Shown: piece after piece, positions 445-46,662 of the stretch
How the letters are laid out: each line of letters opens with the position of its first letter
Numbering within the stretch: position 1 is the stretch's first letter
Assembly: GCF_023055435.1 (NCBI RefSeq)
Contig: NW_025964223.1
Span: 1,922,001-1,986,000 of the forward strand
Length of the DNA stretch: 64,000 nt
Direction: 5' to 3'
Source: Haliotis rufescens
Taxonomy: Eukaryota
Made by a program: the position numbers and the translations under genes
Notes under the pieces: model-generated
Seen by the model: only the letters and a program-made list of their open reading frames with translations
What the model was told of the DNA's origin: nothing
Database searches by the model: none

Positions 445-754
445 ATGTCTTGATTGAGATCACACTTGACTTTCTGCATGCTTCGTACTGATAGCACACT
501 GGAGATTGTTGTCCAAATGTATACTTCTTGTAAAGTTTGAGTCCCACGACCTTGACCTTGTAGTTGGTCCTGGACCGACAGACAGGCAGGAGTGGGATGC
601 CAGCGCTGACCGGGGCAGACGACATCACAACGTACTCCTTCTGACTTCTCTCACAGAACACAACACACAGACCTGCCTTGCTGTCAGAAGGTCCTGTAGG
701 CTTGAGGCTGTAGTCCAGTGGTGCCTTGTGTACCACCTCCATCTCTAAGACGTC
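445..754 (-). CDS. PHYHIPL: PHYHIP-like gene A, second FN3-like exon (terminal PHYHIP_C exon lies left of the window)
   Basis: cag|GAC GTC TTA GAG ATG (DVLEMEVVHKAPLDY...SRTNYKVKVVGL...VISIKT)T|gtaagt. 310 nt, phase 0/1, same length and phases as the homologous exons of C and D. Confidence 0.85.
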
Positions 755-776
755 CTGTACATAGAAGTTAAGCCTA

Positions 777-938
777 GTGAATGAGTATGTTTTTACGCCC
801 CTTTTAGCAATATTCCAGCAATATCACGGCGGGGGACACCAGAAATGGGCTTCACACATTGTACCCATGTCGGGAATTGAACCCGGGTCTTCGGCGTGAC
901 GAGCAAACGCTTTAACCACTAGGCTACCCGACCTCCCC
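777..938 (-). mobile_element. tRNA-derived SINE family 1 (other copies ~1618-1740 -, 9491-9645 -, 15910-16042 +, 24352-24540 -, 52710-52855 -, 63849-64000 -)
   Basis: Head with A/B boxes (gtagcctagtggttaaagcg...gggttcgattcc), a shared body and a (cact)n tail; multiple dispersed copies. Confidence 0.85.
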
Positions 939-1220
939 AGAAGTTAAAGACTACTATCTTCTAAGGGCATTAAGTCATGGTCTGTGTATGTCCAACACAT
1001 TTTTAAAAATACATATATATGACCATTTTTTTTAAACGGTTTTGTTTGTTTAATGCCGCACTCAGCAATATTCCAGCTATGTGACAACAGCCTGTAAATA
1101 ATCAAGTGTAGGCCAGACTATCCAGTGTCCACAACCATCCACGCCGTCAAGGTACGAGGACACGCCATTAACCAAGTCACTGCGCCTGACCACCCGATTC
1201 ATTTAGTTGCCTACAACTAG

Positions 1221-1496
1221 CAGGGGGCACGGGTGTCCAAGTCGTCTAAGGCGCCGCGATTCGCTGTGCAGAGTTGCGTCCCTTAGGCACGCCAGAAACC
1301 TATGATTGTGGGTTCAAATCCCGATTTTGTTTCAAGGTTTTTCAGCACCATACGCGTGCTCGTGGGTTTCACCGAAGTGGTACATGTCTGAGACCTGCAC
1401 CACTTCGGGCTTTCCTCCCACATGAAGCTGACAAGCCGTGATATGACTGGAATATTGTTAAAAGCGGCGTTAAACCCAACTCACTCACTCACTCAC
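1221..1496 (+). mobile_element. tRNA-derived SINE family 4 nested inside a family-2 copy (related copy 23150-23295 -)
   Basis: tRNA-like head (ggttcaaatccc) and (cact)n tail, flanked by the near-direct repeat gcctacaac(t/c)agc. Confidence 0.7.
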
Positions 1497-2013
1497 GCCT
1501 ACAACCAGCTTTGGTTGCTGGGGATCTGTTCTATCCTGGAATTCTATCTTTGAATACTGAAACCTGGTGTGATTGATAATGACAGTCCTCTAGTTGAGGC
1601 CAGGGAATAGGCAGAACAGCAATATCACGGTGGGGGACACCAGAAATGGGCTTCACACATTGTACCCATGTCAGGAATCAAACCCAGGTCCTTGGAGTGA
1701 CGAGCGGACGCTTTAACCACTAGGCTACCTGACCACCCCAACACCATAACATGGCCAAAGTGTCCTCACATCCACATTAAGGGCTAAAACAAGGACTGGT
1801 CAGCTCAGAATACTGTGTCTGAGTGGGGTATTCATGTTAAACTGCGGCATGGTATTTCAGTAGGCTAGCACTATAAATCGGCACCAGTCTGAACTGGTAC
1901 AAGCAGCCACACACACACGTGCATGCACGTTGCTATATAAGTGAAACAGTCTTGAACACAACGTTAAACCCTCTTTCACCTCACATGTCAATATTAAGAA
2001 GATTCAAATTGGT

Positions 2014-2126
2014 CTGGGCCCACTTGCACAAAGCGATCTTAGCGCTAAGATGATTGTAACTCCCATACTTCAACATAGGCTTACGATAGTCTCAGCGCTA
2101 AGATCGCTTTGTGCAAGAGGGCCCTG
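2014..2126. mobile_element. Short palindromic MITE
   Basis: TIRs gggccc.cttgcacaaagcgatcttagcgct ... agcgctaagatcgctttgtgcaag.gggccc. Confidence 0.7.
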
Positions 2127-2244
2127 GTCCTGTGGTATATTATTGTTGACTTTCAAGTTTAAGAAAAGAATGACAATCTTGACCAACAATCCTGACGTTG
2201 GGGCTTTATGCTGCTCGTGTCTATCAACGTATCAGGTTACCTAC

Positions 2245-2324
2245 CTGTGCACCTAACATGTTTATCATTTTTCCCGGTGTAAACTGGTGAATTTTCCCTC
2301 TCAGGTCCATGGTCTTTATTCTCT
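2245..2324 (-). CDS. PHYHIPL: PHYHIP-like gene A, linker exon
   Basis: ttacag|AG AGA ATA...GCA CAG|gtaggt. 80 nt, phase 1/0, encodes (E)RIKTMDLRGKIHQFTPGKMINMLGAQ. Same length as, and similar to, the gene B linker exon. Confidence 0.8.
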
Positions 2325-2577
2325 CTGTAAGCAATGAAGCAGTCTATGTAGTTGACTCACTCAGTCACTCGAAACAAGATGGTTCTTGTACATTTAAAGT
2401 GGTAACTTAAGGTCACTTGTGTACATTGGAATGGGTGCTCTCCCTTTGTCACACTTTCTTTCAGGAGCAGAGCTCAAAGTCCGCTCAATACTTCTTGATC
2501 AAACTCTGCACAGATATCAGTTGTCTTTTGTTATTTAGGAATTTTGGATTTTTCCATTTTTTTCAGGTTCCATGACA

Positions 2578-2800
2578 ACAAGGTAGACACAATTTTATGG
2601 ATAACAACTTCTTTAATACTGTGAAAAGCGATGTTTCGGTATAGATCCCTATACCGTTGTCAAGGAAGACTTGCTTAACAACAGTATAAGGATCTATACC
2701 GAAACGTCGCTTTTCACAGTATTAAAGAAGTTGTTATCCATAAAATTGTATCTACCTTGTCATCCGTCAACTTCTAAGTAATGCCTATCAAACAATTTAT
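2578..2800. mobile_element. Inverted-repeat insertion, Penelope-like terminal remnant
   Basis: Inverted arms of about 85 bp (2578-2760); 12-bp direct repeat tccatgacaaca at 2569-2580 and 2800-2811. Confidence 0.6.
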
Positions 2801-2939
2801 CCATGACAACATTCAAATCAGTGAAAGGTCCATTTCCAGAGCATAACTGATGAACCATTTGTATTTTGACACTTTACTCACCCACACCCTGATGCTGCTT
2901 GTCCTGAACTAAGGTATAGAGTTCAGTCGAAAAGGAATT

Positions 2940-3287
2940 GTCCTGCCTATTCCTGCTTATTCCCTGGCCTCAAAAAGAGGATTGTTCTGTCTATTCCCTG
3001 GGCTCAACAAGAGGACTGTTCTGCCTATTCCTTGGTCAGGGAATAGGCAGAACAGTCCTCTTGTTGAGGTCAGGGAATAGGCAGAACAGTCCTCTTGTTG
3101 AGGTCAGGGAATAGGCAGAACAGTCCTCTTATTGAGGTCAGGGAATAGGCAGAACAGTCCTCTTGTTGAGGTCAGGGAATAGGCAGTACAGTCCTCTTGT
3201 TGAGGTCAGGGAATAGGCAGTACAGTCCTCTTGTTGAGGTCAGGGAATAGGCAGTACAGTCCTCTTGTTGAGGTCAGGGAATAAGCA
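2940..3287. repeat. 33-bp minisatellite with inverted copies at its left end
   Basis: Unit aggtcagggaataggcagaacagtcctcttgttg. Confidence 0.9.
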
Positions 3288-3361
3288 GGTAAATTCTACT
3301 GAGCTTATGCTGAAACTCAGGGACTTTAGTCCACCGGCAGAAACATCGACCCTTAACATAC

Positions 3362-3680
3362 CTTGTGGATTTGAAGCAGGAGAAATGACAACATTATCGG
3401 TTGCCTCCACCGAGTAGGAAGACACCTGGGGGGAACCGGCTTGTTCGGGGGAAACTTGCAGACCATACCCCTGAATGGTGTGCTCCTGCCCTCTGGAAAA
3501 CCCATACCATCTATACACTAGGAGGGAACTTCTTTTGAACAGACACATTTGCTCCATGGTGCCAAGGTGGTTGTTGACTGCTATCAGGATGTGAAAATTG
3601 TCCCTCCATTTTATGTTTAGCTCCAGAAACGGGAAATCAGTGACTGATGATATTAATATCAGCTTTGTTTCATATAGATT
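3362..3680 (-). CDS. PHYHIPL: PHYHIP-like gene A, first FN3-like exon
   Basis: ttacag|AAT CTA TAT (NLYETKL...LELNIKWRDNFHILIAVNNHLG...YSVEATDNVVISPASNPQ)G|gtatgt. 319 nt, phase 0/1, homologous to 21670-21994. Confidence 0.8.
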
Positions 3681-4375: not shown

Positions 4376-4687
4376 TCATTTTTAAGTTTTCAAAATGGTC
4401 TTTGGGGTTGTGACTAATGTATTGTATGTGAAAACCATCCATTTGAGACTAAACAACCACACCATCTGTCTGAACTGTCATAGCGATCCACAGCCATCAT
4501 ATAGCTGGAATATTGCTGAGTGTGGCGTTAAACAACAAACAAACAAACATTTGAGTCTAAACAACCACACCCCCTATCCAGACTTTACAGGAAGTATTTA
4601 GTGAAGCTAACTACACACACTGATCTTGACCATTACCATATGCATTTTACTGAATGTTGTGAAGGTTTTAGAAAACACAAAATGTCA

Positions 4688-7380
4688 AGACACAAGATGT
4701 CTGTTGTTGTCATGCCACAAGATGTCTGTTGTCATGCCACAAGATGTCTGTTGTTGTCATGACACAAGATGTCTGTTGCTGTCATGCCACAAGATGTCTG
4801 TTGCTGTCATGCCACAAGATGTCTGTTGTCATGACACAAGATGTCTGTTGTCATGACACAAGATGTCTGTTGTTGTCATGACACAAGATGTCTGTTGTTG
4901 TCATGACACAAGATGTCTGTTGTTGTCATGACACAAGATGTCTGTTGTCATGACACAAGATGTCTGTTGCTGTCATGACAAAAGATGTCTGTTGTTGTCA
5001 TGACACAAGATGTATGTTGTCATGACACAAGATGTCTGTTGTCATGCCACAAGATGCATGTTGTTGTCATGACACAAGATGTCTGTTGTCATGACACAAG
5101 ATGTGTGTTGTCATGACACAAGATGCATGTTGTTGTCATGACACAAGATGTCTGTTGTTGTCATGACACAATATATCTGTTGTTGTCATGACACAAGATG
5201 TCTGTTGTTGTCATGACACAAGATGTCTGTTGTTGTCATGACACAATATATCTGTTGTTGTCATGACACAAGATGTCTGTTGTTGTCATGACGCAATATA
5301 TCTGTTGTTGTCATGACACAAGATGTCTGTTGTTGTCATGACACAAGATGTCTGTTGTTGTCATGACACAATATATCTGTTGTTGTCATGTCACAATATA
5401 TCTGTTGTTGTCATGACACAAGATGTCTATTGTTGTCATGACACAAGATGTCTGTTGTTGTCATGACACAATATATCTGTTGTTGTCATGACACAAGATG
5501 TCTGTTGTTGTCATGACACAAGATGTCTGTTGTTGTCATGACACAATATATCTGTTGTTGTCATGACACAATATATCTGTTGTTGTCATGACACAAGATG
5601 TCTATTGTTGTCATGACACAAAATGTATGTTGTTGTCATGACACAATATATCTGTTGTTGTCATGACACAATATGTCTGTTGTTGTCATGACACAAGATG
5701 CATGTTGTTGTCATGACACAAGATGTCTGTTGTTGTCATGACACAATATGTCTATTGTTGTCATGACACAAGATGTCTGTTGTTGTCATGACACAATATA
5801 TATGTTGTTGTCATGACACAAGATGTCTGTTGTTGTCATGACACAAGATGTCTGTTGTTGTCATGACACAAAATGTATGTTGTTATGACACAAGATGTCT
5901 GTTGTCATGACACAATATGTCTGTTGTTATGACACAATATGTCTGTTGTTGTTATGACACAAGATGTCTGTTGTCATGACACAAGATGCCTGTTGTTGTC
6001 ATGACACAAAATGTATGTTGTTATGACACAAGATGTCTGTTGTCATGACACAAGATGCCTGTTTTTGTCATGACACAAGATGTCTAGTGTCATGACACAA
6101 TATGTCTATTGTTGTCATGACACAAGATGTCTGTTGTTGTCATGACACAATATATCTGTTGTTGTCATGACACAAGATGTCTGTTGTTGTCATGACACAA
6201 GATGTCTGTTGTTGTCATGACACAAAATGTATGTTGTTATGACACAAGATGTCTGTTGTCATGACACAATATGTCTGTTGTTGTTATGACACAAGATGTC
6301 TGTTGTTGTTATGACACAAGATGTCTGTTGTTGTTATGACACAAGATGTCTGTTGTCATGCCACAAGATGCCTGTTGTTGTCATGACACAAAATGTATGT
6401 TGTTATGACACAAGATGTCTGTTGTCATGACACAAGATGCCTGTTGTTGTCATGACACAAGATGTCTAGTGTCATGACACAATATGTCTATTGTTGTCAT
6501 GACACAATATGTCTGTTGTTGTCATGACACAATATATCTGTTGTTGTCATGACACAAGATGTCTGTTGTTGTCATGACACAAGATGTCTGTTGTTGTCAT
6601 GACACAAGATGTCTGTTGTCATGACACAATATGTCTGTTGTTGTCGTGACACAAGATGTCTGTTGTTGTCATGACACAAAATGTATGTTGTTATGACACA
6701 AGATGTCTGTTGTCATGACACAATATGTCTGTTGTTGTTATGACACAAGATGTCTGTTGTCATGACACAATATGTCTATTGTTGTCATGACACAAGATGT
6801 CTGTTGTTGTCATGACACAATATATCTGTTGTTGTCATGACACAAGATGTATGTTGTTGTCATGACACAAGATGTCTGTTGTCATGACACAAGATGTCTG
6901 TTGTCATGCCACAAGATGTATGTTGTTGTCATGACACAAGATGTCTGTTGTCATGACACAATATGTGTGTTGTCATGACAAGAGATGTCTGTTGTCATGC
7001 CACAAGATGTGTGTTGTCATGACAAGAGATGTCTGTTGTCATGCCACAAGATGTCTGTTGTCATGCCACAAGATGTCTGTTGTCATGCCACAAGATATGT
7101 GTTGTCATGACACAAGATGTCTGTTGTCATGCCACAAGATGTCTGTTGTCATGACAAGAGATGTCTGTTGTCATGACACAAGATGTCTGTTGTCATGCCA
7201 CAAGATGTGTGTTGTCATGCCACAAGATGTGTGTTGTCATGACAAGAGATGTCTGTTGTCATGACACAAGATGTCTGTTGTCATGACACAAGATGTCTGT
7301 TGTCATGACACAAGATGTCTGTTGTCATGACACAAGATGTGTGTTGTCATGACGCAAGATGTCTGTTGTCATGGCGCAAT
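4688..7380. repeat. 21/24-bp minisatellite
   Basis: Unit gtcatgacacaagatgtctgtt(gtt), about 2.7 kb. Confidence 0.97.
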
Positions 7381-8959: not shown

Positions 8960-9490
8960 AGAGGCACAGGACTTTCTTGTACTGCATTTGGCACAATTAG
9001 GAATCAGGGATGAATTTATGGAGGCACAGGACTTTCTTGTTCTGCATTTGGCACAATTAGAAATCAGGGATGAATTTATGGAGGCACAGGACTTTCTTGT
9101 TCTGCATTTGGCACAATTAGGAATCAGGGATGAATTTATGGAGGCACAGGACTTTCTTGTTCTGCATTTGGCACAATTAGAAATCAGGGATGAATTTATG
9201 GAGGCACAGGACTTTGTTGTACTGCATTTGGCACAATTAGAAATCAGGGATGAATGGAGAGGCACAGGACATTGTTGTACTGCATTTGGCACAATTAGGC
9301 ATCAGGGATGAATTTATGGAGGCACAGGACTTTGTTGTACTGCATTTGGCACAATTAGAAATCAGGGATGAATGGAGAGGCACAGGACATTGTTGTACTG
9401 CATTTGGCACAATTAGGAATCAGGGATGAATAGAGGCACAGGACATTGTTGTACTGGATTTGGCACAGTTAGGAATCAGGGATGAATATA
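8960..9490. repeat. ~60-bp tandem repeat, interrupted at its right end by a SINE
   Basis: Unit gaggcacaggactttcttgttctgcatttggcacaattag(g/a)aatcagggatgaatttatg. Confidence 0.95.
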
Positions 9491-11441: not shown

Positions 11442-11461
11442 ATAGATTCTATAGCAATTAC

Positions 11462-30502: not shown

Positions 30503-30564
30503 CCACACATACATGTGTCACATACATGTTAACCATGTCACAGTTAAATGATCAACAGTGTAAG

Positions 30565-31797: not shown

Positions 31798-31851
<54 letters not shown>

Positions 31852-33374
31852 TGTCATGTATGTTTTACTTTACAAGACATTTTAAAATTTAAATAAGAGT
31901 ATATAACATAGTTGCTTTGGAGCATGTTGGAAAAGACCACCCTTCAAGGACCTCTGGACTGAAGCTGATCCGGGTGGGCTGCTTTTGTCATTTGTATTTT
32001 TATGGTGACGTCAACCAAGGTTCAGTTCAATTTTACTGACTAGTGTACGTTGCATGTTTTTAAGATTATTTCGCTGATCCACATACATATGTGTGGCTGC
32101 TTGTACTTGTTCAGACATATTCTGGTTCACTATACTGACTCAGACACATAATACTGATTCTGAGCCGGCCAGTCCTTGTTTAATCCCCATAATGCCTTGC
32201 GCTAGGCAGGGTAACAACAAGTATCATATTTTGACGTCTTTTGGTATGACGCGGACAGGGAATCGAACCGTGGAGGTTCCTCTGTCCACTACCCCACGGA
32301 GGTGGTCGCAGTTCACAGGAGTTGATCGTGTCAGAAAGCAGGATAGAAGCCAGAGTCTTGTGTTCCTTTAAGAAATTGACTCTTGGGTTTAGTCATCTGT
32401 TCATTACACACCCAAACAATAAATAACTGCACGGCTAAAAAATATTAATTTATTAAAAAACGATGTCATAAGAACAACATGAACAAGTATAAACGTTTTG
32501 GCTTGATAATATCACAAAATGAGGAAATACGTGTACAAAATAGATTCATACAAAAATATTCATGGCTATGATCACGTGATAAGAGATGAATATAAATAGA
32601 AACATTATGGTGAAGCATGTTAAATCTCAACGTGTAATTGCTATGCGATCATGATAACATAGGATTTAGTTGTGCAGTCGATCAATAAAGATTGCACTAA
32701 TGCAAGTACTTAACTAACACAATCATGACAAACATTATTCCACACGGAATCAGTGTATAACTTACAAATATCACCGATTTAGTCCTTTGTTCATTACACA
32801 CCTAAAGGATAAATAACTGAAGGATTAAAAAAATAATTTCATCCAAAAAACACCCTATGACAACAACCATCAACTAGTATAACAGATTTGACATGGAAAT
32901 ATCACAAAATGTAGAAATATGAGTACATATTAAATAGAATTAAACACAAAATATGTATGGCAATGATCACGATGATAAGAGATAAATATAGGCAGAAACA
33001 ATTCTGAAGCCTACGGTTATACTATCAGTCAGATTCATTCAAATAAGATTAAAGTAACACAACACATATTACAAATAGCACATATAGAAGGCATATAATT
33101 CAGTTGGCATTCACAAAAGGCATTTGTTCTGTCATTAAGAGAATGAAAGCCCTTCCATATTCAAAAGAAGTCTCTGCAAAAAGAGGCGTCGACCGTAAGA
33201 ATCAGACTCTATCACGAGTTTGTGTTTATGAAGCACTATCAAATAGTGATGATACCAGGTGTTTATGAATCACTATCAAATACCAGGTGTTCTCCAAAAA
33301 TGGTTAGCGTGATGTCATACAAGCATATAACCTCATTTCAAGTCACCCCTTGTATGCAACTCATCATGTTCGGG

Positions 33375-34153
33375 TTAAGGGTCAAAGCTGCAGTCTGGAC
33401 AGTCAAGCTTCTTAGGAATTCCCTCCTTCTTGCTGCGTCCCCTCCCCCGGACACGGACATGTTTAAAATACACCTTGTCCTCCCCACACTTGTCCATCAA
33501 GCCCCTGATGTCGACATCCTCCGTGTACAGAAACTCCACATGGAACTTGTTGACAGACACCATCGTGAACGTCTTCGGAACATCTTTCTGTCTGGACATG
33601 GAACTTCTCGAGTATCCTCTAAGAATGTCTTCAATTTTTCGTGAGCATGATACAAACTGTGACATGAGTGTGGTGTCTTCTCTGACAGTGAAAAATGGGT
33701 TGAGGTGCAAATCCAGTTCAGGAAGCCTCCCCTCACTGAATCTGTCTTCAGCTGATCCCATCTTTGTGACCACAACTGTGACGTAATGTGTTTCCTTGTG
33801 ACAGTAAAAGTCTGAGAAGTACATCCTGGTGTCTGATGTGAACAGTTCCTCCACCGGGATGAAAAGACGTCTGTTTCCGAAGAAGGAGAAGTTCGGTATT
33901 TTCTTTTTGTTCTTTGATCCGCTGAAGAAGAGGCCATTGATTTTGTTGTTGATTGGACAATATGGGTCGCCATTGTTGTCCTTCAGGTACTTCTCCATCA
34001 CTCCAGCTCTGTTGGACATGATGTTATCATAGTAGGACTCAGGTTTGTTGCGGTAGAACTTCGTAACATTATATCTGCCTGGAGTTTGCAGGTTCTTGGA
34101 ACAAAAGGTCTTTGCTTTGTCCAGAAGCTGCTGGAGATCTGCCTTAGTATTGC
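33375..34153 (-). CDS. PHYHIPL: PHYHIP-like gene C, terminal exon (PHYHIP C-terminal domain)
   Basis: ttacag|GC AAT ACT AAG. 779 nt; FYRNK, YLKDNNGDP, GLFFSGS, YFSDFYCHKETHY, HVEFLYTEDVD, CPDC. Reconstructed gene about 494-497 aa. Confidence 0.93.
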
Positions 34154-34387
34154 CTGTAAACAAGGGAGGAAAGGGGAATATTCAAAATAAACGTTAACTT
34201 TATGTATATTCACGTGACATATTCACAGGCAGGTATACAGTGAAATCTTTTTAATCATTGACATTTGACGACTTGAGCCGATTCTAGAACACACAACAAC
34301 CTTTTCCTCTCTTTCCTCACCAAAACACAGTTGAAAGTGGAGTTTAAACTCACTTATTGTTGACAAATGAAAGCAAAGTCAACTTAC

Positions 34388-34697
34388 ATGTCTTGACAGT
34401 GATGGTGTCTGATCCACCAGTTGGTGTGTAGTCCTGACACACAGCTGACCGTTGTCCAGTTTGGTCCACACTGGAACCTGTGAGTCCCACGACCTTGACC
34501 TTGTAGTTGGTCCTGGACCGACAGACAGGCAGGAGTGGGATGCTGGCGCTGACCGGGGCAGACGACATCACAACGTACTCCTTCTGACTTCTCTCACAGA
34601 ACACAACACACAGACCTGCCTCGCTGTCAGAAGGTCCTGTAGGCTTGAGGCTGTAGTCCAGTGGTGGCTTGTGCTCAACCTCCATCTCAAGTCGATC
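34388..34697 (-). CDS. PHYHIPL: PHYHIP-like gene C, second FN3-like exon
   Basis: ttcag|GAT CGA CTT GAG ATG...AAG ACA T|gtaagt; 310 nt. Confidence 0.87.
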
Positions 34698-34982
34698 CTG
34701 AAAATGATATTTTGTCATCAAAATGAAGGGTCTTCAATTTCTCAAACAAAGTTTGATAATTTCATATCCTGATAAAATACAGAATACCAAAGAAAAATAA
34801 TCTCAATTAGTTTCCTTTAATGTGAGTCAAAACAGGGATATCCAATTAAAACTAAAATACATGTGTGTATCTATTCAGAACGTAAAGTAAAACTACATGT
34901 TTTTAAATGCTTCTCGTCAGACTCTATGTGGCTGGACAACACAGACAGAACAAACGGCAAGACACGAGGACTCCTCACTCAC

Positions 34983-35047
34983 CTGAGTCTCCCCCAACAG
35001 GTGCATCACGTGACCAAGTGAGGAGAACCCACAACTCAAGTCCAACT
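34983..35047 (-). CDS. PHYHIPL: PHYHIP-like gene C, linker exon
   Basis: ttcacag|AG TTG GAC...ACT CAG|gtgagt. 65 nt, phase 1/0, encodes (E)LDLSCGFSSLGHVMHLLGETQ. Confidence 0.8.
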
Positions 35048-35856
35048 CTGTGAAACAAAGAGGAAAACATCATTATTATTATTGTTCATACATGTGAAGG
35101 AAATATGCCATGTATATGAACTTGAAATATTTTGCCCAAACATTCGTGTTTCACTGGGCTTCTGATTCAAATATCGGTGCATCTCCAAATGCCATGCACC
35201 ACCCAAGTATCCTAAAGTAAGTTCGAGTGTCTGTACAACAATACAAGGACATCAAAGTGCATGGTGTATGATAGTAGTAAGGGAAATGGCACAATACGTT
35301 TCCTGAAAATATATACAAGGGGTTGAGACATTTTGTAAGATCACATTTGTCATTTGCTTTGATAGACTACATATCCAAAAAACAAAATTGTGTTCATTCC
35401 ATGTATTGTGTCACAGTTTTGCTGTCAGATATGCACAGTAGACCCTCACAAGACCGGACCCTGTTAATCCGGTCACATGTCAAGTTGTTGGAGTGGTATA
35501 TATGTATTCAAAGGAACACATGATTCAATAATCAGGAAATTTGTTAATCTAGAATTTCTTTAAACAGTACTGTCATGTTAGAAAATGTTTCATTGTGTAG
35601 TAAAGCTTCAAAACGTAGTGTTCCACCCTGTTCAGTGGGAGGGTGTTTGAGGATCAAATGAAGACATGAAACAGGTTTTCTTCAGTCTAAGTGAAATGTT
35701 CTCAACAGACATACATTTAACCTGAATGAGATTAACATAACATAAATTCACCTAAAATTCTACTGATCAATTATGATTACAAAACAGTTATGACTTATAT
35801 ATAAGAACAGATCACGATTTCTGTATAATTTGTTAAATAAAACAATTTTCCCATAC

Positions 35857-36169
35857 CTTGTGTCTGGTAAGTTGGAGAAATGACAAGTTTGCGAGTTGTT
35901 TCCACAGTATACGATGTTGCCAAGGGGTATCTGTCGCTGCTCTGTCCAGTGTCAATCTTCAGTCCGAACACCTGGACTGTGTCCAGATCCGGGACTGACC
36001 GCTCCATATCATTGCCAGCCTTCAGAACAAACAGGTGCTTGAGTGACCCCCGTCGGTTGTTGACTGCAAGCATCACGTGGGATATATCCTTCCCACACTT
36101 GATGTGTACTCTCAATACTGGACGGGAGTATTTATTTGTTTTCAGCGATATCCACGATTCTGATGAATT
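35857..36169 (-). CDS. PHYHIPL: PHYHIP-like gene C, first FN3-like exon
   Basis: tttcag|AAT TCA TCA GAA (NSSESWISLK...VQVFGL...YTVETTRKLVISPTYQTQ)G|gtatgg; 313 nt. Confidence 0.83.
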
Positions 36170-36776
36170 CTGAAAAAACTAAGAAGCAAAACAAGCATGT
36201 TATTTTTGTCTGAAGTGAGGGTTGGATTAAAATCAGAATCAATACATTTCCTTGCATAATTTTAGATTTTCACTATCTAATGTCTAACTACAAGAATAAA
36301 AGCCAATGAATATATAGCTGATCTGATGCTGTTTAAAACATTTACATGCATTTTCTAATTGAATTCTCAGGTGGTAACATTGTTATTTGATTGCACACAT
36401 ATTGTGACCAGGTAACCTTTTTTATGTTTTGAGAACAATTACGTTGAGGTAAGTACATGAATTATGAACTATAGCGATCACTGTAAACAATACCTGTAAT
36501 TACGAATGTCAAAATGTAACAATATATGTTTGTCTTGACTAATAAAGTGACATTAGACGTGCAGTAACTGGTGAGAAGAAAACCTTGACAGGTAAGAGAC
36601 ACTTAGATACCACGATGCCTGTCAGTCCCTTGAATGCCACTTAAAGAGATTCCAGGTCTATTACAATAAACAATCCAATTTCTGTTAGACAATTATTGAA
36701 ATCCTAACATATTATACTTGATGCACCAACAACATATTTTGATCAGAAGAATGAAAACTGCCCTTACAATGCTTAC

Positions 36777-36794
36777 ACATCTATGTTCTTCCAT
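36777..36794 (-). CDS. PHYHIPL: PHYHIP-like gene C, start micro-exon (MEEHRC; alternative donor gives exon end at 36768)
   Basis: aagATGGAAGAACATAGATGT|gtaagcatt|gtaagg. Both donors are phase 0. TATAAG lies about 40 nt upstream. Confidence 0.6.
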
Positions 36795-36893
36795 CTTGTT
36801 CAGTTGTATTCAATGATGTGAGTTCGTCATAGCTTATATGCACAACCCTGTCACTCCTATTGATAGCCAGGGGATTGCATGTTGGGAAACTGC

Positions 36894-36917
36894 TGGTTTT
36901 CCCAAAGGGGATTCCCC
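36894..36917. promoter_or_regulatory. Paired kB/Rel sites upstream of gene C
   Basis: tggttttccc (GGGAAAACCA on minus) + aaa + GGGGATTCCCC, a canonical kB site, 100-125 nt upstream of the ATG. Confidence 0.6.
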
Positions 36918-37380
36918 TAAAGAAGCTTCTCGTCTGACCTTCATCTTGGCCTGGGAGGTGTTATTGGCGCTATCAGAGGTATTACCTGACACAGGTGACC
37001 AGTGTTAGGATGTGTGTGTGTATTTATATAACATCCGGCTTGTATCTGACCTGTGTATTCAGATATTATTTATCATTGTGGTGTTTAACACTGCAGTCCA
37101 ACCACACATGGACAAACTGCTATCAGCAGGTCATTGTAACCTGGTAATCCCGAACTATTTTTAGAACAAGGTTACAACAGCTGAAAGTTAAATGCACTGC
37201 GCACAAAGAGCTTGCATCGTTTGACTTTATGTGAGTAGAATACCAAGATAGACATTTGTTTAATGTTATAGATACTGCTTGATCTTATGTATATTGAAAT
37301 TGGAATATGTATTTAATAGTTAGAATTTTATTTCAGAATGTCCATAAATTATGAAATCAGTCATTGTTATTTTATGATAA

Positions 37381-38445
37381 GTGGTGGAGACTGGATACAA
37401 CTTGAGCGTATGTGGTGGAGACTGGACACAACTTGAGGGTATGTGGTGGAGACTGGACACAACTTGAGGGTATGTGGTGGAGACTGGACACAACTTGAGG
37501 GTAAGTGGTGGAGACTGGACACAACTTGATGGTATGTGGTGGGGACTGGACACAACTTGAGGGTATGTGGTGGAGACTGGACACAACTTGAGGGTATGTG
37601 GTGGAGACTGAACACAACTTGAGGGTATGTGGTGGGGGTTGGGACTGGACACAACTTGAGGGTTTGTGGTGGGGGTGGGTACTGGACACAACTTGAGGGT
37701 ATGTGGTGGAGACTGGACACAACTTGAGGGTATGTGGTGGAGACTGGACACAACTTGAGAGTATGTGGTGGAGACTGGACACAACTTGAGAGTATATGGT
37801 GGAGACTGGACACAACTTGAGGGTATGTGGTGGAGACTGGACACAACTTGAGGGTAAGTGGTGGAGACTGGACACAACTTGATGGTATGTGGTGGGGACT
37901 GGACACAACTTGAGGGTATGTGGTGGAGACTGGACACAACTTGAGGGTATGTGGTGGAGACTGGACACAACTTGAGGGTATGTGGTGGAGACTGGACACA
38001 ACTTGAGGGTATGTGGTGGAGACTGGATACAACTTGAGGGTATGTGGTGGAGACTGGATACAACTTGAGCGTATGTGGTGGGGACTGGACACAACTTGAG
38101 GGTATGTGGTGGAGACTGGATACAACTTGAGCGTATGTGGTGGAGACTGGATACAACTTGAGGGTATGTGGTGGAGACTGGATACAACTTGAGGGTATGT
38201 GGTGGAGACTGGACACAACTTGAGGGTATGTGGTGGAGACTGGACACAACTTGAGAGTATGTGGTGGAGACTGGATACAACTTGAGCGTATGTGGTGGAG
38301 ACTGGACACAACTTGAGAGTATGTGGTGGAGACTGGACACAACTTGAGAGTATGTGGTGGAGACTGGACACAACTTGAGGGTATGTGGTGGAGACTGGAC
38401 ACAACTTGAGGGTATGTGGTGGGGGTTGGGACCGGACCCAACTTG
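37381..38445. repeat. 31-bp minisatellite upstream of gene C
   Basis: Unit gtggtggagactggacacaacttgagggtat. Confidence 0.97.
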
Positions 38446-38997
38446 AAGGTACGTTGTTAGGACTGGAATGGATCATTGAAATAATGTACTCACACATTTA
38501 ATAATGACACGACTGAAAAAAGCTCTTCAAACGCTGATGTAGGATTGAAAGGGTCAGGAGGAATTATCTGATTAAGTTTTCCTACCACCTGACATGCATG
38601 CCAAAAGTCTCAGAAAACTTGGAAACATCATGACGCAGACTAGTTTTGTGGGAAGCAAAATGAGTCTCCGCATAAACAACTGAAAAGGATAACTAACGAT
38701 GATAAACAACAATCACAAAACATTCAGAAGTTACAAAGAGAATTTTATATACACCTCGTCAAAAGGATCGCACCAAGGTTTTTGATAATCAGAAAAGAGA
38801 TTGGTAAGGAGAAGCTGGAAAGCGAAACTAAAGCAATGAAAACTGTTACTTGATGTCCAATAAGATGTTGATTTTATGACTAATAGGAAACATAAGCATT
38901 TGTAAAGAAAAACAAATTATTCGCAAGCGACTACAAGGACTGTAATTTGGGATCAATACTGGCTGTATAAGTAAGGTAACTGTCCATAATGAGATTG

Positions 38998-40090
38998 TGG
39001 CCACCCTGTACACGGATCACATTCGCAAGACGTTTTACATGCATAACATCAGACCCCTGATCCTCAACTGAGGGATGTGTTGCCATTCTTGATGCAGTGC
39101 CTAAGTCAATTCTTGGAGATTCTGCACTGGAGGGTGCCTGGCACAAAGCCTACCTCCCAACTGATCCCATAGATGATCCGTTAGATTTGGGTCTGGACTT
39201 CGAGAAGGCCAAAGCAGAGTCTCAATGGCGTTGTTCTGGTGATGGTCTGTCTCAGGAAGTGCTCAGTTGGATCGGGCACAGTCGTCCATGAAGACTGGAC
39301 GTGTGGCAAGTGCAAAGTTATCAACATGAGGCACAACAAAACCGTCCAATGTTGTATCTTCACTATCTTGGTACCTTTTCCATTTAATGTCCCCTGAACT
39401 GTGACTAAATCAAGTTTACAACCAAAGGAGCAACAACCCCGTACCATTCCCGAGCCGCCGCCACATGCTACTATTTCCTGGATGTTGCGCTGATGATAAG
39501 ATGTTCCTCTTTGGCTCCAGAGACGAGTCCTGCCATCAGTGCGTGGCTAAACAGTCCCGAATGTATTGGGGTGAGAGTCCAATTGGTCTTCTGATCCTTA
39601 ATCCTGTTTGTATTCATTCGACGCCTGGTGGTACTGAGGGACACTCTGTTGTGGGAAGAACAGTGCAAGTTGAAGTTGGCAGACGTTTTGTCATTTCTGG
39701 CACTAGTCTACCGTAGAAATCCCGATATCGGCCAGTTCCTAACATGTCCAGTCAATGGGTGTTTTTAAATGAGCCGATTGATTACCTTTTCGTTTATGTT
39801 CAACACGGTGGCAATAACTCGACATGATATGCCAGTTTGGTGCACGCCAGTGATTTGCCATCCTAGATTTTCTGGGACGTCATTAAACATGAATTTCTCT
39901 GTAGAGACCCCTAAGGTGTGCAAACGGCTCGCAGAAAGACACTCACAAGGTTGGGCAGTGTAGGAGGCTACCATTATACAGGCAGATGATGTGTCAACAC
40001 TCAGTGTACCATTTGAAAACCTCTACATTGAAAATAAACTCTCATTTACACATCAAACTGGGTGGTGCGATACTTTTGACGAGTTGTGTA
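38998..40090 (-). mobile_element. Degenerate Tc1/mariner transposon
   Basis: WQITGVHQTGISCRVIATVLNIN (HTH), TDGRTRLW...GGGSGMVRGCCSFGCKLDLVTVQGTLNG, VVPHVDN..LATRPVFMDD, ALHQEWQHIPQ...VIRVQGG; TIR-like end acttttgacgagttgtgta. Confidence 0.85.
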
Positions 40091-41026
40091 TATGTTTAAA
40101 CGCTCGTAAAAGTGCAACATTTTACTGCACGTTACTTTAGCTTCACTGAGCTGTCTTAAAGTGTGCATAGCGATAATCCGTGCGTTGATACAAGGTGAAT
40201 ACAGACGTGTGTGTTAAAGAGGGGTTCTCGGAAACAACTCAATCCGCTTGTCAATCACGTTATCATCAGTGGCCTCAGACATGCAATGCCAACTACTGAT
40301 TGACCTTGTCTTGTTCCGTGTGAACTCGTCCTCCTTCTTCATCAAACAACCAAGGCAAAATTCTCTGGAAATGATCTTGCTTAGCTCCAAACTGTAACAA
40401 CATGTCTGTGAGTATTCCACATTGTGTATGTTGTAGGCAGTGTCTAATTCATTCACTAAAACGTTCTCTTATGCATAGATATATTCACCACGTCCATGCA
40501 TAACATTTCAATTCATGGGCTGTTGAAATAATGATGTGAACTGACAGTCTACTCATTTGATTGGGTCGCTGACGAATATAAGACGTCAACACCAGAGGAA
40601 ACCAGACTCGGTTATCCGCGGAAACATATTCCATTGGGCGCAAGAGGCAAAATACATGTGGAAATTAGTCATGACACCAGGCAAAAAGGATAAGCCTACC
40701 GGTATCACAAACACACAATGTGCATAAAAAACGTAAGTATTTGTTGTCTGACACTCTGCAGCAGTACTGCGATGCGACGGCGGCCTGTAAACAAACCATT
40801 CAATCAAGTGATGGACCATAAAATCCACACACGATAAGCCAGGAACCGAAGCCTACATTTCAATACGACTCACAGATATCTGACAATCCCTAACAGGATA
40901 TGTATGAACTATAACACTCGTACGTCTAAATCTCAAACATAAAGAGTTCCAACATGACAAAACTCAACCTGAACTTTTTGATAATGGATGAGGTGAGTTT
41001 GAATGGGGTTTTACGTCACGTTTGGG

Positions 41027-41103
<77 letters not shown>

Positions 41104-43189
41104 ACATAGTTGCTTAGGGGCATGTTGGAAAAGACCACCCTCCAAGGACCTCTGGACTGAAGCTGATCAGGGTGGGTTGCTTTTGTCATTTGTTTTTTTA
41201 TGGTGACATCAACCAAGATTCCGCTGTATTTTACTGACTGGTGTGTGTTGCATGTTTGAGATTATTTCGCTCACCTACATACATGTGTGTGGCTGCTTGC
41301 TTGATGCTGCTTCTGGTTCAGACTCACTATACTGACTCATACACATAATACTGATTCTGAGCCGGCCAGTCCTTGTTTAATCCCCATAATGCCTTGCGCT
41401 AGGCAGGGTAACAACAAGTATCATGTTTTGACGTATTCTGGTATGAAGCGGAGAGGGAATCGAACCGTGGACTTTCCTCTGTCCAGGCAGAGGCTCTGTC
41501 CACTACCCCACGGAGGTGGTCGCAGTTCACAGGAGTTGATCGGAGTTTAAGAAATTGACTCTTGGGTTTAGTCATCTGTTCATTACACACCCAAACAATA
41601 AATAACTGCAGGGCTAACAAAATATTAATTTATTAAAAAACGATGTCATAAGAACAACATGAACAAGTATAAACGTTTTGGCTTGATAATATCACAAAAT
41701 GTAGAAATACGTGTACAAAATAGATTCATACAAAAATATTCATTGCTATGATCACGTGATAAGAGATGAATATAAATAGAAACATTATGGTGAAGCCTAC
41801 GTTAATACTTTGGGCCAGATTTGTTCCAACAAGATTAAAGAAACACAACCCATATTTCAAGTAGCACAAAGCTTGCTGCTACAATCATGAAAATGTCACA
41901 AAATGTAGACATACGAGTATATGTTAAAAGCATAGAAAGCATATACAGAGCTATAATCATGATGATAAGAAATGAATAGAAATAGAAATAATATCGCAAA
42001 GTCTGCTGTAATACTATCAGCAAAATAAAATAAACATATTTGTTCAAACATAACAAATATTTACAACATTGATAACAATGAAAATCATGAAAATATCACA
42101 TGGTGGATTGACAAACGTAACCAACAAACTCGACCGGGAACTATGACGGACACTGTATTAATAGACGTTCTATTTTCAGGCATGTCATAACAGATAAAAA
42201 AGAAACACGGTACACATTATGACTAAAACTGGTGAAGCAATATTACCTTCTTTGATGTGTTTGATACAACTGCCAACACACAATGCGTCATCACATACAG
42301 AAATGGGATATTTATACATAAAACTATTGCACTGAAGAGAGGCATGGAATGGACACAGAAAAAAAACACATGTTAAATCTCAACGTGTAATTGCTATGAG
42401 ATCATGATAACATAGGATTTAGTTGTGCAGTCGATCAATAAAGATTGCACTAATGCAAGTACTTAACTAACACAATCATTACAAACATTATTCCACACGG
42501 AATCAGTGTATAACTTACAAATGTGACACTGGAAGCCAGCACCGATTTAGTCCTTTGTTCATTACACACCTAAAAGATAAATAACTGAAGGATTAAAAAA
42601 AATAATTTCATCCAAAAAACACCCTATGACAACAACCATCAACTAGTATAACAGATTTGACATGGAAATATCACAAAATGTAGAAATATGTGTACATATT
42701 AGATAGAATTAAACACAAAATATGTATGGCAATGATCACGATGATAAGAGATAAATATAGGCAGAAACAATTCTGAAGCCTACGGTTATACTATCAGTCA
42801 GATTCATTCAAATAAGATTAAAGTAACACAACACATATTACAAATAGCACATAGAGGAGGCATATAATTCAGTTGGCATTCACAAAAGGCATTTGTTCTG
42901 TCATTAAGAGAATGAAAGCCCTTCCATATTCAAAAGAAGTCTCTGCTAAAAGAGGCGTCGACCGTAAGAATCAGACTCTATCACGAGTTTGTGTTTATGA
43001 AGCACTATCAAATAGTGACGACACCAGGTGTTTATGAATCACTATCAAATAGTGACGACACCAGGTGTTTATGAATCACTATCAAATAGTGACGATACCA
43101 GGTGTTCTCCAAAAATGGTTAGCGTGATGTCATACAGGCATATAACCTCATTTCATGTCACCCCTTGGATGCAACTCATCATGTTCGGG

Positions 43190-43968
43190 TTAAGGGTCAA
43201 AGCTGCAGTCTGGACAGTCAAGCTTCTTAGGAATTCCCTCCTTCTTGCTGCGTCCCCTCCCACGGACACGGACATGTTTAAAATACACCTTGTCCTCCCC
43301 ACACTTGTCCATCAAGCCCCTGATGTCGACATCCTCCGTGTACAGAAACTCCACATGGAACTTGTTGACAGACACCATCTTGAACGTCTTCGGAACATCT
43401 TTCTGTCTGGACATGGAACTTCTCGAGTATCCTCTAAGAATGTCTTCAACTTTTCGTGAGCATGATACAAACTGTGACATGAGTGTGGGGCCTTCTCTGA
43501 CAGTGAAAAATGGGTTGAGGTGCAAATCCAGTTCAGGAAGCCTCCCCTCACTGAATCTGTCTTCAGCTGATCCCCTCTTTGTGACCACAACTGTGACGTA
43601 ATGTGTTTCCTTGTGACAGTAAAAGTCTGAGAAGTACATCCTGGTGTCTGATGTGAACAGTTCCTCCACCGGGATGAAAAGACGTCTGTTTCCGAAGAAG
43701 GAGAAGTTCGGTATTTTCTTTTTGTTCTTTGATCCGCTGAAGAAGAGGCCATTGATTGTGTTGTTGATTGGACAATATGGGTCGCCATTGTTGTCCTTCA
43801 GGTACTTCTCCATCACTCCAGCTCTGTTGGACATGATGTTATCATAGTAGGACTCAGGTTTGTTGCGGTAGAACCTCGTAACATTATATCTGCCTGGAGT
43901 TTGCAGGTTCTTGGAACAAAAGGTCTTTGCTTTGTCCAGAAGCTGCTGGAGATCTGCCTTAGTATTGC
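43190..43968 (-). CDS. PHYHIPL: PHYHIP-like gene D, terminal exon (PHYHIP C-terminal domain)
   Basis: 779 nt; 8 nt differences from the gene C exon by manual comparison. Confidence 0.93.
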
Positions 43969-44202
43969 CTGTAAACAAGGGAGGAAAGGGGAATATTCAA
44001 AATAAACGTTAACTTTATGTATATTCACGTGACATATTCACAGGCAGGTATACAGTGAAATCTTTTTAATCATTGACATTTGACGACTTGAGCCGATTCT
44101 AGAACACACAACAACCTTTTCCTCTCTTTCCTCACCAAAACACAGTTGAAAGTGGAGTTTAAACTCACTTATTGTTGACAAATGAAAGCAAAGTCAACTT
44201 AC

Positions 44203-44512
44203 ATGTCTTGACAGTGATGGTGTCTGATCCACCAGTTGGTGTGTAGTCCTGACACACAGCTGACCGTTGTCCAGTTTGGTCCACACTGGAACCTGTGAGT
44301 CCCACGACCTTGACCTTGTAGTTGGTCCTGGACCGACAGACAGGCAGGAGTGGGATGCTGGCGCTGACCGGGGCAGACGACATCACAACGTACTCCTTCT
44401 GACTTCTCTCACAGAACACAACACACAGACCTGCCTCGCTGTCAGAAGGTCCTGTAGGCTTGAGGCTGTAGTCCAGTGGTGGCTTGTGTACCACCTCCAT
44501 CTCTAATCGATC
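44203..44512 (-). CDS. PHYHIPL: PHYHIP-like gene D, second FN3-like exon
   Basis: ttcag|GAT CGA TTA GAG ATG...ACA T|gtaagt; 310 nt. Confidence 0.87.
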
Positions 44513-44796
44513 CTGAAATTGACATTTTGTCATCAAAATGAAGGGTCTTCAATTTCTCAAACAAAGTTTGATAATTTCATATCCTGATAAAATACAGAAT
44601 ACCAAAGACAAAATCTCAATTTGTTTCCTTAAATGTGAGTCAAAACAGGGATATCCAATTAAAACTGAAGAATACATGTGTGTATCTATTCAGAACGTAT
44701 AGTAATACTCATGTTTTTAAATGCTTCTCGTCAGACTCTATGTGGCTGGACAACACAGACAGAACAAACGGCAAGACACGAGGACTCCTCACTCAC

Positions 44797-44861
44797 CTGA
44801 GTCTCCCCCAACAGGTGCATCACGTGACCAAGAGAGGAGAACCCACAACTCAAGTCCAACT
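44797..44861 (-). CDS. PHYHIPL: PHYHIP-like gene D, linker exon
   Basis: 65 nt, bounded by AG/GT, near-identical to 34983-35047. Confidence 0.8.
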
Positions 44862-45602
44862 CTGTGAAACAAAGAGGAAAACATTATTATTCTTATTGTT
44901 CATACATGTGAAGGAAATATGCCATGTATATGAACTTGAAATATTTTGCCCAAACATTCGTGTTTCACTGGGCTTCTGATTCAAATATCGGTGCATCTCC
45001 AAATGTCATGCACCACCCAAGTATCCTATAGTAAGTTCGAGTGTCTGTACAACAATACAAGGACATCAAAGGGCATGGTGTATGATATTAGTAAGGGAAA
45101 TGGCACAATACGTTTCCTGAAAATATATACAAGGGGTTGAGACATTTTGTAAGATCACATTTGTCATTTGCTTTGATAGACTACATATCCAAAAAACAAA
45201 ATTGTGTTCATTCCATGTATTGTGTCACAGTTTTGCTGTCAGATATGCACAGTAGACCCTCACAAGACCGGACCCTGTTCATAAATTTGTTAATCTAGAA
45301 TTTCTTTAAAAAGTACTGTCATGTTAGAAAATGTTTCATTGTGTAGTTAAGCTTCAAAACGTAGTGTTCCACCCTGTTCAGTGGGAGGGTGTTTGAGGAT
45401 CAAATGAAGACATGAAACAGGTTTTCTTCAGTCTAAGTGAAATGTTCTCAACAGACATACATTTAACCTGAATGAGATTAACATAACATAAATTCACCTA
45501 AAATTCTACTGATCAATTATGATTACAAAACAGTTATGACTTATATATAAGAACAGATCACGATTTCTGTATAATTTGTTAAATAAAACAATTTTCTCAT
45601 AC

Positions 45603-45915
45603 CTTGTGTCTGGTAAGTTGGAGAGATGACAAGTTTGCGAGTTGTTTCCACAGTATACGATGTTGCAAAGGGGTATCTGTCGCCGCTCTGTCCAGTGTCA
45701 ATCTTCAGTCCGAACACCTGGACTGTGACCAGATCCGGGACTGACCGCTCCATATCCTTGCCAGCCTTCAGAACAAACAGGTGCTTGAGTGACCCCCGTC
45801 GGTTGTTGACTGCAAGCATCACGTGGGATATATCCTTCCCACACTTGATGTGTACACTCAATACTGGACGGGAGTATTTATTTGTTTTCAGTGATATCCA
45901 CGATTCTGATGAATT
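45603..45915 (-). CDS. PHYHIPL: PHYHIP-like gene D, first FN3-like exon
   Basis: 313 nt, bounded by AG/GT, near-identical to 35857-36169. Confidence 0.83.
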
Positions 45916-46521
45916 CTGAAAAAACTAAGAAGACAAAACGAGCATGTTATTTTTGTCTGAAGTGAGGGTTGGATTAAAATCAGAATCAATACATTTCCTT
46001 GCATAATTTTAGATTTTCACTATCTAATGTCTAACTACAAGAATAATAGCCAATGAATATATAGCTGATCTGATGCTGTTTAAAACATTTACATGCATTT
46101 TCTAATTGAATTCTCAGGTGGTAACATTGTTATTTGATTGCACACATATAGTGACCAAGTAACCTGTTTGATGTTTTGAGAACAATTACGTTGAGGTAAG
46201 TACATGAATTGTGAACTATAGCGATCACTGTAAACAATACCTGTAATTACGAGTGTCAAAATGTAACAATATATGTTTGTCTTGACTAATAAAGTGATAT
46301 TAGACGTGCAGTAACTGCTGGGAAGAAAACCTTGAGAGGTAAGACACTTAGATACCACGATGCCTGTCAGTCCCTTGAATGCCACTTAAAGAGATTCCAG
46401 GTCTATTACAATAAACAATCCAATTTCTGTTAGACAATTATTGAAATCCTAACATATTATACTTGATGCACCAACAACATATTTTGATCAGAAGAATGAA
46501 AACTGCCCTTACCATGCTTAC

Positions 46522-46539
46522 ATGTCTATGTTCTTCCAT
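46522..46539 (-). CDS. PHYHIPL: PHYHIP-like gene D, start micro-exon (MEEHRH; alternative donor gives exon end at 46513)
   Basis: aagATGGAAGAACATAGACAT|gtaagcatg|gtaagg. Confidence 0.6.
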
Positions 46540-46638
46540 CTTGTTCAGTAGTATTCAATGATGTGAGTTCGTCATATCTTATATGCACAGCCCTGTCACT
46601 CCTATTGATAGCCAGGGGACTGCAGTGTGGGAAACTGC

Positions 46639-46662
46639 TGGTTTTCCCAAAGGGGATTCCCC
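46639..46662. promoter_or_regulatory. Paired kB/Rel sites upstream of gene D
   Basis: tggttttccc-aaa-ggggattcccc, identical to gene C. Confidence 0.6.

Follow-up and report, generated by a model that had tools for sequence, protein, structure and literature searches.

PHYHIP and PHYHIPL are conserved animal proteins for which we know of no biochemical activity and, to our knowledge, the biochemical function of their C-terminal domain, PHYHIP_C, is unknown from nematodes to humans. A stretch of 64,000 nucleotides from the abalone Haliotis rufescens (hereafter the window; G000:C445:1922001-1986000) carries several genes of this family side by side, which raises the question of what such neighbouring copies are and what they might be for. 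The original prediction, made from the window alone, took them for an expanded, diversifying set of cytosolic, pathogen-inducible enzymes with varied targets. Window coordinates are used throughout, negative coordinates lying to the left of the window start; the whole genome searched comprises 1.33 Gb in 615 contigs. Database, family and fold searches used single exons, while spliced models joined from window coordinates served for frame checks, substitution ratios and local tblastn.

A tandem array of five PHYHIP-family genes

The window lies in a genuine and expressed tandem array of five PHYHIP-family genes in one orientation—gene0, A, B, C and D—which spans about 78 kb. All PHYHIP-related coding sequence in the window is on the minus strand, the strand of every gene described below, and the window holds B, C and D with most of A. 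At least four same-strand genes had been predicted; the array is real, with the corrections that the strand is minus, that A is only partly in the window and that gene0 is a fifth member. Long open reading frames (ORFs) with the Pfam domain PHYHIP_C (PF19281) occur at 17091-18053, 33375-34163 and 43190-43978, and the scores of B (107.8 bits, E 8e-31), C (103.9 bits, E 1.2e-29) and D (101.6 bits, E 6e-29) are far above the gathering score of 27 bits. In A and gene0 the domain was matched by a family model in the whole-genome search.

B, C and D are five-exon genes, intact from start to stop. Gene C (33375-36794; 500 residues) comprises exons e1 36794-36768, e2 36178-35857, e3 35047-34983, e4 34697-34388 and e5 34153-33375, and is supported by RNA joints and an intact ORF. 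Gene D (43190-46539; 500 residues; e1 46539-46513, e2 45924-45603, e3 44861-44797, e4 44512-44203, e5 43968-43190) has an open frame and an e1-e2 junction seen in RNA. Gene B (17091-22178; 574 residues; e1 22178-22167, e2 21994-21670, e3 19316-19237, e4 18619-18247, e5 18025-17091) was modelled by homology only, with an intact ORF and GT-AG introns. Gene A, also modelled by homology, has GT-AG introns and a frame open from e2 to e5, giving a protein of at least 510 residues. Its exons e2 (3680-3362), e3 (2324-2245) and e4 (754-445) occupy 445-3680, and e5, located by genome search and the homology model, lies at -847 to -1670, that is 0.85-1.67 kb before the window start, with PHYHIP_C at G000:C445:1920669-1921073. 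Directly 3' of its stop stand three tandem 103-nt copies of its last 22 codons (-1705 to -1976). Gene0, found by genome search some 20 kb to the left of A, spans at least -31818 to -18225. Searches by similarity, for kB-like or TATA-like motifs and for a mini-exon pattern found no exon 1 or promoter of A or gene0.

The shared exon structure of the original prediction is borne out in lengths, phases and splice sites, with a small exon 3 added from the RNA joints. Across the array e2 measures 319-325 nt, e3 65 or 80 nt, e4 310 or 373 nt and e5 779-935 nt; the phases are identical and all introns are GT-AG. The proteins of A, B, C and D carry two N-terminal domains that look beta-rich and end with PHYHIP_C. 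Divergence has the expected range: C and D share 97% of protein and 98.4% of coding sequence (CDS), whereas B and C share only 53% of protein sequence. The N-terminus of C and D is MEEHR..., starting at an in-frame ATG that precedes the e1 donor by 24 nt and has a good context. A loss of the start codon in gene C, suggested by an ATG-to-ATT change at the end of e1, was considered and rejected, since that upstream ATG makes the change irrelevant.

A relic exon resembling e2 stands at about 10180-9990 on the minus strand, detected by tblastn with the B model (E 2e-5) and broken, in three-frame translation, by a frameshift and stop codons; beyond it no further relic exon was found at E <5. The predicted pseudogenisation is confined to this relic and to fragments in other parts of the genome; B, C and D remain intact, and A is open over e2-e5.

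Transcription of the array

The RNA data are assembled contigs of four coded runs, flagged as probable RNA, that were placed on 33000-37375. All four contig sets contain minus-strand GT-AG joints at 34152/34387, 34696/34982 and 35047/35857, and spliced joints of this kind show the runs to be derived from cDNA. They correspond to the e2-e3, e3-e4 and e4-e5 junctions of C and D and revealed exon 3 (35047-34983). A 12-letter loose end past 36179 matches exactly at 46513-46525 upstream of D, where C differs at two letters; exon 1 was thereby identified, and at least D is transcribed. At sites of exon 2 that distinguish C from D, the contigs carry D-type letters at most positions and C-type letters at others. 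Other loose ends hold A-specific sequence (at 34481) and gene0-specific sequence (at 34688 and 34496, including the gene0 e3-e4 junction), so A and gene0 are also transcribed.

Two further observations concern these data. Just downstream of the 3' end of gene C, at 33146-33291, the summed depth of the RNA contigs is very high (266-1150) with many loose ends, and the stretch probably represents a dispersed repeat transcribed at many places in the genome. In runs X6, X8, X10-X12, X17 and X18, which are labelled as other organisms (organisms B, C and D), 30-81% of sampled 31-mers from the gene C region are present, which implies either near-identical copies in related taxa or mislabelled or hybrid samples.

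Tandem units and the identity of C and D

Self-BLAST resolves 28642-48197 into two tandem units of about 9.75 kb each. Their gene parts, promoter included (32616-38467 and 42369-48197), are 94-96% identical, whereas the paralogous spacers to the left of C (28642-32616) and of D (38650-42368) are only 80-83% identical. Within 33000-37375, substitutions between C and D amount to 1.6% of coding and 2.4% of non-coding positions. To judge from these identities, the pattern fits an old tandem duplication with a gene part that was homogenised recently.

It is very improbable that C and D are instead two haplotypes of one gene misassembled in tandem, in which case the array would be smaller than it appears. 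Their divergence does lie within the range of alleles in marine molluscs, and the C copy has its left edge 1.4 kb away from an assembly gap. However, the two copies, with the 3.9-kb spacer that separates them, share a single unbroken stretch on the right of this gap, the RNA contigs hold letters of both types, and the diverged spacers beside near-identical gene parts argue against an assembly artefact and for an old tandem unit. The minisatellites of the two units also differ threefold in length.

The gap itself (31169-31324) falls in the intergenic spacer between B and C, outside every gene, and that it might interrupt a gene was ruled out because no exon spans it. It is flanked by a truncated retroelement-like ORF on one side and a CA-rich microsatellite on the other, inside a 524-bp insertion, made up of a retroelement fragment and the microsatellite, that is missing from the paralogous spacer left of D.

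Large minisatellites of 31-bp units are found 0.6 kb upstream of the promoters of C and D, at 37381-38422 (1 kb) and 47111-50187 (2.8 kb, plus a 47-bp array). They yield long spurious ORFs on both strands, and the threefold difference in their length sets apart two units that are otherwise 94-96% identical.

Gene conversion, selection and the variable insert

Sliding identity and synonymous divergence (dS) both confirm gene conversion, as the original prediction had proposed. One tract, which starts about 70 nt into intron 4 and covers the first 160 codons of exon 5, is 90-100% identical between A and B, and their dS is 0.08 in the PHYHIP_C core compared to more than 1.2 elsewhere. A second tract joins A to C and D, and also to gene0, with 95-100% identity over about 200 nt in the 5' part of exon 4 (dS 0.06-0.12 between A and C/D), whereas in the 3' part of the same exon the identity of A to C/D is only 50-60%. 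Outside such tracts dS is 0.7-3, and between pairs of genes it ranges from 0.02 (C-D) to more than 1.2 (B-C).

These comparisons show an array that evolves by tandem duplication, by loss, of which the one relic exon is an example, and by patchwise conversion. Conversion keeps the PHYHIP_C core and part of domain 2 near-identical between some paralogs, while domain 1, the 3' part of domain 2 and the insert diverge freely. Copies of differing age, a pseudogenised remnant and conversion tracts are found together, which agrees with the birth-and-death evolution that had been proposed.

That the array is diversifying under selection finds no such agreement. The ratio of non-synonymous to synonymous divergence (dN/dS), taken pairwise, is below 1 in every region: 0.26-0.49 in domain 1 (0.80 for C-D, on only five non-synonymous and two synonymous changes), 0.11-0.60 in parts of PHYHIP_C, and 0.8-0.9 in the 3' part of domain 2 between A or B and C or D. 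For the whole CDS of C and D it is 0.68 (17 non-synonymous, 7 synonymous), which is compatible with neutrality and only marginally above 0.3 (p 0.04). These ratios point to rapid divergence with relaxed constraint in places; positive selection is not demonstrated.

A variable insert in the C-terminal domain had also been predicted, and one of 37-82 residues, specific to this subfamily, lies between the NPFFT motif and the KTF-M-SV strand. By alignment it occupies about 17300-17555 in B (82 residues), 33570-33680 in C and 43385-43495 in D (37 residues each), all on the minus strand; it has 50 residues in A and 57 in gene0. The equivalent linker in other copies of the genome, where measurable, has only about 14-22 residues. 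The insert is unalignable between paralogs, even between A and B, although their PHYHIP_C core just upstream is 90% identical in protein. It is rich in Ser, Thr, Pro and Gly in A and gene0, and its predicted local distance difference test score (pLDDT) is about 60 in the structural model of C compared to more than 90 on either side, so that it is probably disordered.

Promoters of B, C and D

A motif scan suggests that B, C and D start from TATA-type promoters that keep a kB-like palindrome and a GGGAA half-site. The C promoter (36834-36917) has the palindrome GGGGAATCCCC at 36917-36907, GGGAAAACC at 36903-36895 and a TATA-like box at 36844-36834; in the D promoter (46579-46662) the same elements stand at 46662-46652, 46648-46640 and about 46589-46579. 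In both genes GGGGAATCCCC-TTT-GGGAAAACC is 73 nt upstream of the TATA-like box GTGCATATAAG, and the box is about 41-45 nt upstream of the ATG. The B promoter (22236-22363) carries GGGGAATCACC-ACT-GGGAA at 22363-22345 and the TATA-like GTGCATATACC at 22246-22236. Here GGGGAATCACC-ACT-GGGAAGTAC is followed by GTGCATATACC in the same order and orientation as in C and D, with GGGGAATCACC 117 nt upstream of the TATA-like box. All three sites are on the gene strand, and that of B (22353-22363) is a one-mismatch copy of GGGGAATCCCC.

The kB-type promoter sites claimed earlier are therefore present, at 36907-36917 and 46652-46662 and, with one mismatch, at 22353-22363, and a kB consensus in the proximal promoter is kept among the three paralogs. 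The rest of the B promoter is unalignable with that of C or D. The composite GGGGAATCMCC-N3-GGGAA has six sites in the 1.33 Gb, of which the promoters of B, C and D account for three, and none in a reversed control; because C and D are copies of each other, these amount to two independent observations of the motif rather than three. A quick look at the other three sites recognised no gene. At one of them (G000:C334:19012671-19012689, minus strand), a possible first-exon donor, AAT/GTAAGT, follows about 45 nt downstream.

Copy number and lineage

With the family model, at least 21 PHYHIP_C matches were found in the genome. Five are local, at 1.891, 1.921, 1.940, 1.956 and 1.965 Mb of contig C445, ten are clustered on contig C179, three lie at 18.6 Mb of C445 and the rest are scattered. 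The second cluster (C179:2783567-2902152) consists of ten PHYHIP_C exons in a clade of this genome's copies only; two of its ORFs (L004 and L009) run on into long tandem-repeat tails that are acidic or rich in Gly, Ser, Asn and Gln.

In a tree of PHYHIP_C domains, gene0, A, B, C and D form a clade with two unnamed database proteins (support 99). One of these two, with 91% identity to gene0, presumably represents the gene0 orthologue of a related species. A further twelve copies from the genome form a separate, genome-only clade (support 98), and Lamellibrachia and Mytilus show expansions of their own. The relatives in this tree were gathered with gene C as the query, which biases the sampling. 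The nearest named protein relatives are molluscan and annelid, and a profile search of 1.84 billion representatives recovered 891 clusters (50% identity) at E <=1e-3, which indicates a family far more diverse than two vertebrate genes suggest. The predicted lineage-specific expansion is supported for the local array, which appears lineage-restricted; expansion as such is not unique to this lineage, as Mytilus and Lamellibrachia attest.

Fold and conserved residues of PHYHIP_C

The exon 5 product of C, modelled with AlphaFold from 50 aligned relatives, gave a confident prediction (pLDDT 90.6; predicted TM-score 0.86). Foldseek returned nothing at E <=1e-3 with this model. Its best matches, all weak (E 0.03 or weaker), were diphtheria toxin, exotoxin A, cholix, OspC3 and PARPs. 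An independent fold search placed 43 of 48,161 chains at Z >=2, and all 43 belong to the ADP-ribosyltransferase (ART) superfamily; the best has Z 4.1, with a root-mean-square deviation of 3.6 Å over 95 residues. The matches include DarT, Tpt1/KptA, PARP1/2/3/4/16, tankyrases, the pertussis and Plt toxins, scabin and pierisin, as well as Rhs ART toxins, CopC/OspC3, Arr, SPN, Tne2 and ART-like non-enzymes. Re-examination of the Foldseek candidates agreed with this ART-only result.

Conservation was assessed in the 50 relatives and in 133 further representatives, with residues numbered as in the C exon 5 product. R34, K57, R95, D114, C117, H122, E206, C251 and C254 are invariant or nearly so in both sets, and among the further representatives the putative catalytic Arg is kept in 131 of 131 and the putative catalytic Glu in 128 of 133. 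The family motifs YRNK, KDxNGD, GLFF and FxDFYC...H, the Glu of VE-x-x-YTE and a C-x-x-C near the C-terminus are present in A, B, C, D and gene0 and are invariant in the 183 members. By counting from the starts of the aligned ranges, R34 would fall at His862 of PARP1, Arg9 of pertussis toxin and Arg77 of scabin.

On the strength of the model, PHYHIP_C probably has an ART-superfamily fold. The claim that the proteins are enzymes gains weak support from these matches, none of which exceeds Z 4.1, and whether the domain is catalytically active is doubtful. A dead, ART-like pseudo-enzyme, which would read or sense NAD, ADP-ribose or a modified protein and whose coupling the array would diversify, might also account for a hit list confined to ARTs and for an STS-type position that is not conserved in the PHYHIP family, and non-enzymes such as AvrPphF ORF2, Agrobacterium 6b and the PARP-like domain of RCD1 are among the hits. 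The near-complete retention of the putative catalytic Arg and Glu is hard to square with such a loss of activity, and this alternative is unlikely.

The exon 2 and exon 4 products were predicted to be beta-rich from their strand pattern only; neither has an fn3 or any other Pfam match. The AlphaFold model of the exon 4 domain from four paralogs is unusable (pLDDT 44.5), and hhalign found no match between that domain and the N-termini of relatives. No signal peptide or membrane segment was found in B, C or D, in keeping with the original prediction. Their N-termini are hydrophilic and hydropathy over 19 residues peaks at 1.47, so that the proteins are likely, to judge from sequence, to be cytosolic or nuclear.

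Proposed role of the array

As a whole, the locus is best explained, if only tentatively, as a set of Rel/NF-kB-driven cytosolic proteins that bind or use NAD and bear variable targeting parts. In this mechanism a Rel/NF-kB-type factor would drive transcription of the array under stress or infection. The invariant PHYHIP_C core would then act in the cytosol as an NAD-binding or NAD-using module; it is predicted to combine an ART-like fold, whose first core strand bears an invariant Arg and a late strand an invariant Glu, with a Cys-His-Cys-Cys cluster. The variable N-terminal domains and insert would choose the partner or target. A stronger version, in which PHYHIP_C is a highly divergent, unrecognised ART enzyme and the array encodes NF-kB-inducible cytosolic ADP-ribosyltransferases whose core is retargeted by the N-terminal domains and insert, seems unlikely.

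Several results weigh against this explanation. The fold matches, with Z of at most 4.1, are below the usual noise level of the tool (7-8), so that the ART argument draws its force from a hit list free of other folds, not from any single match. The candidate Ser of an R-S-E triad, Ser77, is kept in only 26 of the 50 and 69 of the 133 members. PDB sequences searched with a profile of the PHYHIP_C alignment gave no hit, Pfam searches of all 50 members at E up to 10 found no ART family, and look-alikes in the ESM Atlas were unrelated proteins with few shared features and no ART among them. Plain kB consensus sites are not above chance in the window (9 found, 6.2 expected), and eight of the nine come from the two palindromes; no kB-like motif was found near A or gene0, whose promoters were not located. 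Positive selection was not detected, every regional dN/dS (0.11-0.89) being a pairwise value and the insert being unalignable. Finally, vertebrate PHYHIP is known only as a binding partner.

Some of the same facts would suit ordinary, non-enzymatic PHYHIP-type adaptors that arose by neutral birth and death and serve tissue-specific, non-immune roles, with the kB-like motif being the site of another factor or an ancestral remnant. Vertebrate PHYHIP and PHYHIPL are described only as interaction partners, and the literature found on them concerns brain and cancer; searches for invertebrate PHYHIP, for abalone and for PHYHIP with ADP-ribosylation found nothing relevant, and no work on the family in invertebrate immunity was among the results. 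A dN/dS of 0.1-0.9 without a sign of positive selection and fold matches of only Z <=4.1 are also as an adaptor would lead one to expect. Adaptors are a serious possibility, if short of a probable one: R34, K57, R95, D114 and E206 are invariant across the family, as might be expected of an active or ligand-binding site more than of a variable interface, a rare composite kB-like motif has been kept in promoters that are otherwise unalignable, and several lophotrochozoans have expanded the family in tandem independently, which would be uncommon for a housekeeping adaptor.

The array documents an intracellular multigene family that combines tandem duplication, patchwise conversion, a variable insert peculiar to the subfamily and a conserved kB-like promoter element. 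For the family as a whole, the confident model, the ART-only matches and the conserved Arg, Glu and Cys-His-Cys-Cys residues point to a possible binding or use of NAD. If the proposed induction is true, the array would add candidate effectors of a new class in a mollusc of commercial and ecological importance. If its proteins were inducible ART enzymes as well, they would form an enzyme-based system inside the cell that parallels the secreted multigene defence families of invertebrates. Should induction be absent, the locus would still be a clean example of concerted evolution confined to the core of a domain.

Neighbouring sequences

An ORF at 62678-62992 (minus strand) matches Pfam ATE_C, the C-terminus of arginine-tRNA-protein transferase (E 3.8e-9), and probably belongs, as an exon, to an ATE1-type gene beside the array. 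Tandem repeats are unusually abundant at the locus. Six more long minisatellites occur within the array, in its introns and spacers, and outside it, at 4683-7369, 8961-9487, 19560-20193, 26301-27269, 28958-30500 and 58359-60860, with units of 25, 60, 42, 42, 50 and 33 bp, respectively. Two retroelement-like ORF fragments with a YGSEIWGF...MVCGECGR motif occur at 13394-15074 (minus strand) and 31029-31168 (plus strand), one of them cut by the assembly gap.

Comparison with known systems

Like vertebrate PHYHIP and PHYHIPL, in which PF19281 follows an FN3 domain, the array proteins contain PHYHIP_C (102-108 bits against a threshold of 27) with all residues invariant in the family, lack a signal peptide and have a beta-rich region before the domain. 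They differ in having two N-terminal domains, which neither Pfam nor profile comparison recognises as FN3, and an insert of 37-82 residues inside PHYHIP_C. Vertebrates have two dispersed genes, whereas five tandem copies are found here and at least 21 in the genome, and the promoters of B, C and D bear a kB-like motif that sets them apart from the vertebrate genes.

PHYHIP-like expansions in other lophotrochozoans (Mytilus, Lamellibrachia, Gigantopelta, Patella and Lottia; P0005-P0041) have the same domain at 33-43% identity. Some Mytilus proteins, of 430-451 residues, have two-domain N-termini, and the lophotrochozoan relatives form species-specific clades. These relatives lack the long insert, and no similarity was detected between their N-terminal domains and those of the array, which stands apart in its own clade with 99% support.

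The ART superfamily—PARPs, DarT, Tpt1/KptA and the pertussis-, scabin- and diphtheria-type toxins—is the sole fold class matched by the predicted PHYHIP_C, in whose model one Arg of the first core strand and one Glu of a late strand are invariant. In contrast, searches found no sequence similarity to ARTs, Z ranges only from 2 to 4.1, the middle motif lacks conservation, and PHYHIP_C has an extra Cys-His-Cys-Cys cluster and an N-terminal helix.

A last comparison is with the defence multigene families of invertebrates, such as the FREPs of snails, Sp185/333 of sea urchins and the C1q-domain proteins of bivalves. Those proteins are secreted and their induction is documented, whereas the array proteins are predicted not to be secreted and their induction is a proposal. 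With these families the array shares tandem arrangement, mosaic conversion and relic copies, and a hypervariable segment beside a conserved core.

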